A DNA stretch of 64,000 nt. Origin: Dendrobates tinctorius. Taxonomy: Eukaryota. Numbering within the stretch: position 1 is the stretch's first letter; the number at the start of each line of letters is the position of its first letter. The stretch spans positions 31,682,001 through 31,746,000 of the forward strand of contig NW_027361743.1 of assembly GCF_039654945.1 (NCBI RefSeq). Reading direction: 5' to 3'. A program made the translations under genes and the position numbers. Under the pieces are notes generated by a model. It was given only the letters and a program-made list of their open reading frames with translations, made no database searches and was not told the origin of the DNA. Shown piece after piece: positions 31,093 to 31,171 of the stretch.

Positions 31093-31171
31093 CTGTCTCA
31101 AATGGGTACGCCTTGCCGTGGTGGGACAGCTTTATACTTTTTTGATCAAAACAGTGTTTACCAAGTACCTA
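31093..31171 (+). ncRNA. HDV-like ribozyme fold, copy 3 (best preserved)
   Basis: P1 CUGUCUC(31093-99)/GGGACAG(31123-29); P2 UGGGUAC(31103-09)/GUACCUA(31165-71); P3 GCC/GGU; L3 UUGCCGU; C31130-U31131; P4; J4/2 CCAA with putative catalytic C31161. Confidence 0.82.

Follow-up and report, generated by a model that had tools for sequence, protein, structure and literature searches.

A candidate HDV-like ribozyme with a doubly inverted core in an abundant frog repeat and in ant-like and phage sequences

HDV-type ribozymes have been described with a small set of fixed core letters: a 2021 review counts G1 among six invariant nucleotides and calls the G.U wobble essential (PMC8495972). The CPEB3 ribozyme (Rfam RF00622), which is a single conserved intronic copy, combines G1.U37 with a C-G P1.1. 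Theta ribozymes, which abut tRNA 3' ends, follow the layout P1, J1/2, P2, ACC/GCC, U, CC/UC/GC, NCGU/C, GGU/GGC, P1', GG/GA/GC, L4, CUAA..., P2'; approximately 125 entries from the published list all start with G, have a P1.1 of the form NC/GN and are without P4 (PMC10879173). Two solved structures show other core letters (PMC13635239): the C. briggsae HDV ribozyme has U-1/C1 and a weak P1.1 of U:A plus C:U and cleaves at 9.3 per min, and the Ackermannviridae HDV ribozyme has a P1.1 of U:A plus U:U. The solved C. briggsae precedent for C1, as described there, indicates that a G at +1 is not absolute. Within the literature covered by our search, with several key papers lying outside it, we found no description of a G-C-inverted P1.1 or of its coupling to C1-G37, and none of a frog, tandem-repeat or retrozyme-type delta ribozyme.

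We analyzed a 64,000-nucleotide stretch of the Dendrobates tinctorius genome (contig NW_027361743.1, positions 31,682,001 to 31,746,000; here called the window), for which an original prediction had proposed four HDV-like copies with their helices in the HDV/CPEB3 order. Sequence reading, a descriptor scan and a covariance model, R1, confirm these four copies (A to D; Table 1). The frog variant resembles the CPEB3 ribozyme in its 7-bp P1, 3-bp P3, 7-nt L3 of the form UU-x-N-CGU, single Watson-Crick P1.1 pair beside a non-Watson-Crick second position, P4 hairpin and C-N-A-A J4/2. It differs from CPEB3 in that both the first pair of P1 and the P1.1 pair are inverted and in that the copies lie in high-copy repeats. 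C1-G37 is present in all window copies in place of a G at +1 with a G.U wobble to position 37, and P1.1 is found in inverted form, with the G in L3 and the C in J1/4. The segment around L3 reads ACC or GCC, UUGNCGU and GGU in copies A, B and D, and copy C has an extra U. Compared with the theta class as laid out in PMC10879173, the core letters are nearly the same, and J4/2 is CUAA or CCAA in theta ribozymes; the frog copies nevertheless fall outside that class, with a P4 of 24 to 29 nt, C1, UG/CU and no tRNA neighbor.

Copies A and B are 94 to 99% identical across approximately 250 nt and thus represent one event rather than two independent ones. The P2 of copy B is weakened (GGAUAC) by a private change at 24720, where essentially all contigs of the family have G. 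Copy C differs from A and B in the sequences of P1, P2, P3 and P4, which still pair (P1 CUGGCAA/UUGCCAG, 7/7; P2 UAAGG/CCUUA; P3 ACU/AGU), and keeps UUGACGU, J1/4 CU and J4/2 CCAA; its extra U, absent from the original prediction, follows L3 and also permits an alternative layout with a 4-bp P3 and a 6-bp P1. Copy D keeps the core ACC-UUGUCGU-GGU, with one base missing from P1' and an unrecognizable P2'. Two further points of the original prediction were borne out by these readings, namely, that the P1 helices of A and C are unlike in sequence while both pair 7/7 and that P3 takes the forms GCC/GGU, ACC/GGU and ACU/AGU, which we read in A, D and C, respectively. Copy A looks intact; P2 is defective in B, L3 of C has one base too many, and D is dead.

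Table 1. Positions of the predicted ribozyme copies, their parts, the repeat units that carry them and the variable positions of the frog family (window coordinates).
Feature	Positions	Strand	Description
Copy A	31093-31172	+	Best-preserved predicted ribozyme; descriptor match and R1 47.4 bits
Copy A, P1	31093-31099	+	CUGUCUC
Copy A, P1'	31123-31129	+	GGGACAG
Copy A, P2 5' strand	31102-31109	+	AUGGGUAC; P2 of up to 8 bp
Copy A, P2'	31165-31172	+	GUACCUAU
Copy A, J1/2 plus P2 5' strand	between P1 and P3	+	10 nt
Copy A, P3	31110-31112	+	GCC
Copy A, P3'	31120-31122	+	GGU
Copy A, L3	31113-31119	+	UUGCCGU; 31115 is the G of the flipped P1.1
Copy A, J1/4	31130-31131	+	CU
Copy A, P4 hairpin	31132-31160	+	29 nt
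Copy A, J4/2	31161-31164	+	CCAA; predicted catalytic C is 31161
Copy A, predicted cut	31092/31093	+	
Copy B	24656-24733	-	Near-duplicate of A, inverted; R1 49.7 bits; predicted cut 24734/24733
Copy C	18970-19043	-	Divergent; R1 17.4 bits, E 0.054
Copy D	36637-36712	+	Decayed; R1 33.1 bits, E 2e-6
Repeat array with copy B	24494-25191	-	Full ~397-nt unit 24987->24591; partial second unit 24590->24494
Inverted partial unit	24994-25191		Pairs with the first unit of the copy B array
Upstream part of copy A repeat unit	30124-30192	+	Parted from the ribozyme by insertion 30193-31066
Family variant, P2	24720		P2 is restored by the consensus G, which copy A also has
Family variant, P1	24728		U.G to C-G
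Family variants, P4	24691, 24690		C-G to U.G and A-U to G.U
Family variant, P4 mismatch	24674		Within the mismatch
Family variant, J4/2	24664		CCAA to CUAA; free N of CNRA
Family variant, J1/2	24724		Within J1/2
Family variants, G to A	24705, 24708		Common only in one putative RNA run; <1% of DNA depth

The L3 motif TTGNCGT alone occurs in the window at chance frequency (16 sites versus 16.8 expected). The full descriptor, which combines a P1 of 7/7, a P3 of 3/3, CU, CNRA and a P2' of at least 5 bp, matched only A and C when the window was scanned, with copy B failing solely on its private P2 change, and it gave two matches in 200 shuffled windows. Replacing the J4/2 C by A, G or U in the descriptor gave no discrimination, the slack of the descriptor being too wide. 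The training set of R1, a model of P1 and P3, consisted of A, B and six phage sequences and excluded C and D; searched with filters off against 128 kb, R1 recovered A, B, C and D and nothing further. HDV-like descriptors constrain little and are known to pick up false positives (PMC4870747), and A and B count only once, both of which would favor a chance or compositional match of a repeat to a permissive descriptor. The shuffled-window count and the recovery by R1 of copies on which it was not trained exclude such a match, and the covariation and controls described below hold over three unrelated sources; we regard this explanation as extremely improbable.

Minimum free energy folding recovered P1 and P4, with z-scores of -0.1 to -0.7 that are no better than those of shuffles and are uninformative because the folding ignores pseudoknots. 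Searches with Rfam 15 gave no gathering-score match for the copies in the window. With the Rfam HDV-type models at E values up to 10, the region from 18.5 to 37.2 kb gave none except one partial match on copy A; the best model was HDV-F-prausnitzii (gathering score, 44), with 10.5 bits on copy A (partial, in the correct register) and 12.6 bits on the ant-like locus L078. The expectation that standard searches would miss the variant was therefore correct for Rfam 15, where no score exceeds 12.6 bits, and agrees with the approximately 125 theta entries from PMC10879173, all of which have G1 and the NC/GN form of P1.1.

We found the same core in metagenome contigs and in viral contigs. Scanning metagenome contigs with the pattern GGGTAC-N-CCTTG-N-CG-N-GGT-N7-CT returned 44 AT-rich, ant-like contigs that carry the flipped core, along with GC-rich bacterial coding matches that fail the P1 test. 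The host is identified as an ant by a neighboring exon with 90% identity to Lasius niger and 82% to Harpegnathos saltator. The ant copies read CCCUCUC-AC-GGGUAC-ACC-UUGACGU-GGU-GAGAGGG-CU, followed by P4 and then by C(U/C/G)AA-C-GUACCC, with a J4/2 of CUAA, CCAA or CGAA. Their P4 is a single long hairpin of 131 to 160 nt, except for 32 nt in L110 (range, 32 to 160 nt), a locus that also has UUGUCGU as L3 and a compensated P1 (CCCUCCC/GGGAGGG). Many ant copies have uncompensated single P1 mismatches, as in decaying repeats. The motif sits in a region that is present in multiple copies and whose conservation extends for at least 1.3 kb, and the ant element (L078:3630-4180; loci L003-L113) has a TATA-like box and TCAG 12 to 30 nt before the predicted cut. 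We considered the ant copies as LINE 5' ends and rejected this assignment, as the 2.3 kb downstream contain no notable ORF of at least 70 aa and conservation already begins at least 600 nt before the motif. As a separate observation, the first bases of the P4 of the ant element, CAGUACCC, copy P2' and could form an alternative, P4-less pairing.

Viral contigs were scanned with the pattern ACCTTG-N-CGTGGT-N7-CT, which covers at least 118 loci. Among the flipped-core matches listed, 28 of 119 pass the full descriptor, and the passing sites have 14 distinct P1 and at least 15 distinct P2 sequences among the matches listed. Some of these phage sequences lack P4 (loop UUAAA), and in others it is a short hairpin or has a length of about 35 nt; J4/2 is CUAA or CUGA. 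Two of the sites lie directly at tRNA genes, as do theta ribozymes (PMC10879173): in L232, P1 begins at 1711, directly after the last base of the Rfam tRNA match (1710), and in L146 a tRNA-Met called by ARAGORN ends at 5231, which is the first P1 base. These two cases are also the two G-first P1s of the flipped set among the matches listed. The presence of the flipped core in ant-like contigs and in phages indicates that it is not specific to frogs. Set against the theta scheme of PMC10879173, the frog, ant and phage sequences depart only by UG/CU and, mostly, by C1.

The phage contigs also yielded several side observations. One contig, L172, has three flipped-core candidate ribozymes (1271, 3472 and 4620), and at least 15 loci (L126, L133, L136 and others), mostly from sample 3300045988, have the P1 CCCACAC/GUGUGGG with a P4 of 35 to 43 nt. 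Contig L510 has type-P1 twister matches at 3499-3562 and 4596-4659 (-), with 58.3 and 49.7 bits against a gathering score of 67.2; they sit among tRNA genes, and the same contig carries a delta-type candidate of the UUA...UU form.

To align these sequences, we used a covariance model and scripts, as plain MAFFT alignment of the full-length ribozymes left P1 and P2' out of register; the model-based alignment holds 48 matches, which correspond to 40 distinct sequences. Across these 40, all seven P1 pairs change on both strands, and 98.7% of the cells are paired. None of 500 shuffles reached the observed pairing, and slid controls gave 37 to 56%. The P1 alignment was fitted to the model, which favors structure; the slid and shuffled controls and the comparison of CU with GU described next are independent of that fit.

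Control scans for P1.1 were run on viral contigs with at least 118 or so loci per core. With UUG as L3, none of the 117 matches listed for the mismatch control UUG...GU pass, versus the 28 passing sites of UUG...CU (P = 1.3e-9 among the matches listed). The first pair of the distinct P1s in the flipped set is C-G in 12 cases, G-C in 1 and G.U in 1. The canonical, CPEB3-like core UUC...GU was recovered in phages as well, with 23 of the 121 matches listed passing, and its distinct P1s begin with G.U (14), G-C (1) or A-U (1). UUA...UU passes once in the 122 matches listed, with C-G as first pair (L510), and UUU...AU passes in 28 of the 119 listed, with C-G in 7 distinct P1s, G.U in 4, G-C in 4 and A-U in 1. 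Among the matches listed, C1-G37 therefore accompanies the flipped P1.1 in 12 of 14 distinct P1s and G1.U37 accompanies the canonical P1.1 in 14 of 16 (C-first versus other, flipped versus canonical, P = 1e-6). By these first-pair counts, P1 often starts with C whenever P1.1 is other than C-G, and it does so almost invariably with a G-C P1.1. In the U-A P1.1 class of the phage scan, C1-G37 is found in 7 of 16 distinct P1s among the matches listed. In the C. briggsae and Ackermannviridae ribozymes (PMC13635239), P1.1 is U:A plus C:U or U:U rather than G-C, and a P3 pair C18:G28, A23 and G25 fit the ACC...GGU and N-CG layout. The ant and phage cores, the P1 covariation and the CU/GU control thus support the proposal that the frog copies belong to a variant with a flipped P1.1 and a pyrimidine at +1. 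Since the swapped core also occurs in ant DNA and in phages, the variant looks genuine, a form of a known ribozyme that has mostly gone unnoticed.

The original prediction had also offered an alternative register, in which the cut would lie one base upstream and an 8-bp P1 would place a purine at +1 facing the J1/4 C, with no P1.1. The base before C1 in the window copies (A, A, G and A/G) is consistent with this register. In the 14 distinct phage P1s listed, however, the -1 base is A in 6, U in 4, C in 4 and G in none, and it is U in the ants, so that G was never found there among the matches listed; moreover, A-C is no pair, the CU-versus-GU control ties the J1/4 C to the L3 G, and the L232 tRNA ends directly before P1. 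The alternative register did not survive this comparison, and we consider it very unlikely. The conserved core might instead mark a delta-like structured RNA in which C1-G37 and the G-C P1.1 abolish catalysis and which has another role, such as protein binding or RNA stability; the view that HDV depends on G1 and the G.U wobble (PMC8495972) would fit such an RNA. Nevertheless, C-N-A-A, the U...CG of L3 and the spacing are kept in frogs, ants and phages, two of the flipped-P1.1 cases lie at the theta position for tRNA 3'-end processing, and a C1 member of the family cleaves at the rate quoted above (PMC13635239), all of which argues against a noncleaving RNA, which we consider improbable.

To survey the frog repeat family, we mapped Logan contigs from four runs onto the copy B unit. 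The family is very abundant (1182 contigs in one run, which is probably DNA; summed word depth of 10^4 to 8x10^4) and was found under at least four organism labels. Joints that go back, for example from 24984 to 24604 (plus 18 letters), reveal head-to-tail units of approximately 380 to 400 nt elsewhere, in agreement with the 397-nt spacing observed in the window. The noncoding repeat unit of A and B includes at least 100 nt upstream of the predicted cut, and conservation extends to either side of it; therefore, the picture of LINE 5'-end trimming does not fit A and B. Stem variants of the family mostly keep pairing, and neither the first C of CCAA nor the remainder of L3 appears among the variants listed in Table 1 (10% threshold; five more variable positions exist). 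The fixed core of the original prediction stands in part: CCAA is constant within the window (A, B and C), but across the wider frog family both C and U occur as its second letter. Variability in the core is only modestly below that of the flanks, and the CpG of L3 is retained in more than 99% of DNA depth. High copy number together with the retained CpG suggests that the copies are young or constrained. A subfamily with P1' GGGAUGG and L3 UUGUCGC was recovered from a loose end common to 7 and 42 contigs, and part of the copy C stretch also occurs in runs under three organism labels. Near copy B, the inverted partial copy of the ~397-nt unit creates a hairpin at 24820-25191 with 168-nt arms that are 97% complementary. 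Rfam models of plant miRNA precursors give this hairpin 104 bits (gathering score, 200), an artifact of its length.

The window contains transposon debris, including a LINE reverse transcriptase (15689-16582), an integrase (22464-22829) and a Harbinger-type transposase (26142-27053). An ORF at 18009-18551 is the SGNH-esterase ORF1 of a CR1/L2-like LINE and is 71 to 84% identical to Ranitomeya imitator proteins. We rejected copy C as the 5'-end ribozyme of this adjacent element: LINE homology begins only at 18389, which means that the LINE copy is 5' truncated and that C, not being its 5' end, is unrelated to it. The unit of copy A is split 26 nt upstream of the ribozyme by an 874-bp insertion (30193-31066) that runs from TGTTAGG to CCTAACA (TG...CA), these ends being terminal inverted repeats of 7 bp. 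On either side lies the 6-bp direct repeat GGTAGG (30187-30192 and 31067-31072), so that the insertion resembles a solo LTR. A reading of AG/GTAGGT upstream of A and B as an intron boundary was likewise set aside, the better account being a repeat with an 874-bp insertion and a GGTAGG target duplication.

Such a transposon graveyard raises the question of whether the window copies, A included, are dead relics of mobile elements that fold on paper and have no cleavage or function today. D is decayed, C has its extra base after L3 and B its P2 mismatch, the insertion cuts A off from its upstream unit, and several contigs of putative RNA runs span the predicted cut site, as would be expected of relics. 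Against this, A has every core letter that is kept across kingdoms, a 7/7 P1 and an 8-bp P2, and the family is extremely abundant with its L3 CpG kept at the depth given above. We consider dead relics an unlikely explanation, although a less remote one than those weighed above, and continue to read the copies as members of a ribozyme family.

Other features of the window are recorded here as separate observations. A sub-threshold type I hammerhead match at 33879-33921 (+; 22 bits, gathering score 34, E 0.3) borders a GC-rich satellite made of 30-nt tandem repeats (33525-33906 and 34523-34753). Blocks of a 53-nt tandem repeat are found at 32936-33364, ~1.8 kb downstream of A, and at 36927-37085, ~0.2 kb downstream of D. 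With C and B in minus and A and D in plus orientation, the layout shows an approximate mirror symmetry centered on 27.9 kb. Every copy has a short GGUUAGAGU-like element ahead of its predicted cut, and before D this element is present twice (36527-36560 and 36617-36650).

Taken together, copies A to D are probably HDV-like ribozyme copies with a variant core that would self-cleave and that would have a processing role on the abundant repeats that carry them. The RNA would fold as a nested double pseudoknot in the order P1-P2-P3-L3-P3'-P1'-J1/4-P4-J4/2-P2'. Both of the stacked pairs flanking the scissile phosphate would be inverted, with C1-G37 in place of G1.U37 and a G-C in place of a C-G P1.1, and the single G-C P1.1 pair would lie beside a U-U, with the other core letters standard (U...CG in L3 and C-N-A-A in J4/2). 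If the mechanism is analogous to that of HDV, the general acid would be the leading C of CCAA (31161 in copy A), with a bound Mg2+, and cleavage 5' of C31093 would leave a 2',3'-cyclic phosphate on the upstream RNA and a 5'-OH on the RNA that contains the ribozyme. Since the ~397-nt unit also occurs head to tail, one cut per tandem unit would free unit-length RNAs, as in hammerhead retrozymes.

We propose, more tentatively and at slightly less than even confidence, that the HDV core has two interconvertible states, G1.U37 with C-G and C1-G37 with G-C, and that the second, present in phages, ants and frogs, escapes current models and descriptors and powers a delta counterpart of the retrozymes in frogs, with unit-length and possibly circular RNAs. 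The G.U wobble and the C-G P1.1 are built into HDV-type searches and into the explanation of the metal-ion site. A widespread doubly inverted core would mean that surveys that fix those letters undercount the ribozyme class, and it would provide a natural double mutant with which to probe the contribution of the wobble pair to catalysis. The flipped core also links phage ribozymes of the tRNA-processing kind with repeats in animal genomes.

The repeated carrier of the frog copies is a likeness to the delta-type ribozymes of mobile elements, which trim a co-transcript (PMC3774820, PMC6765202). In those elements, however, the upstream sequence varies with each insertion, whereas upstream of the frog ribozyme lies the repeat itself, in tandem units, and the frog unit has no reverse transcriptase ORF after the ribozyme. 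The hammerhead retrozymes and the amphibian repeats of the satellite-2 type are noncoding, approximately 330 to 400 nt long and often tandem, with one ribozyme per unit (PMC7229834; 10.64898/2026.07.22.740005), and they are very abundant in amphibians, as is the frog unit. The frog unit differs in that it carries a delta-type candidate, and an Rfam search of the ~397-nt unit found no hammerhead ribozyme. If the candidate cleaves as predicted, the tandem self-cleaving repeats of amphibians, so far known only with hammerheads, would gain a second class of ribozyme. We infer that the closest functional analogy is to the hammerhead retrozyme or satellite type, in which each unit of a tandem transcript would be cut once.
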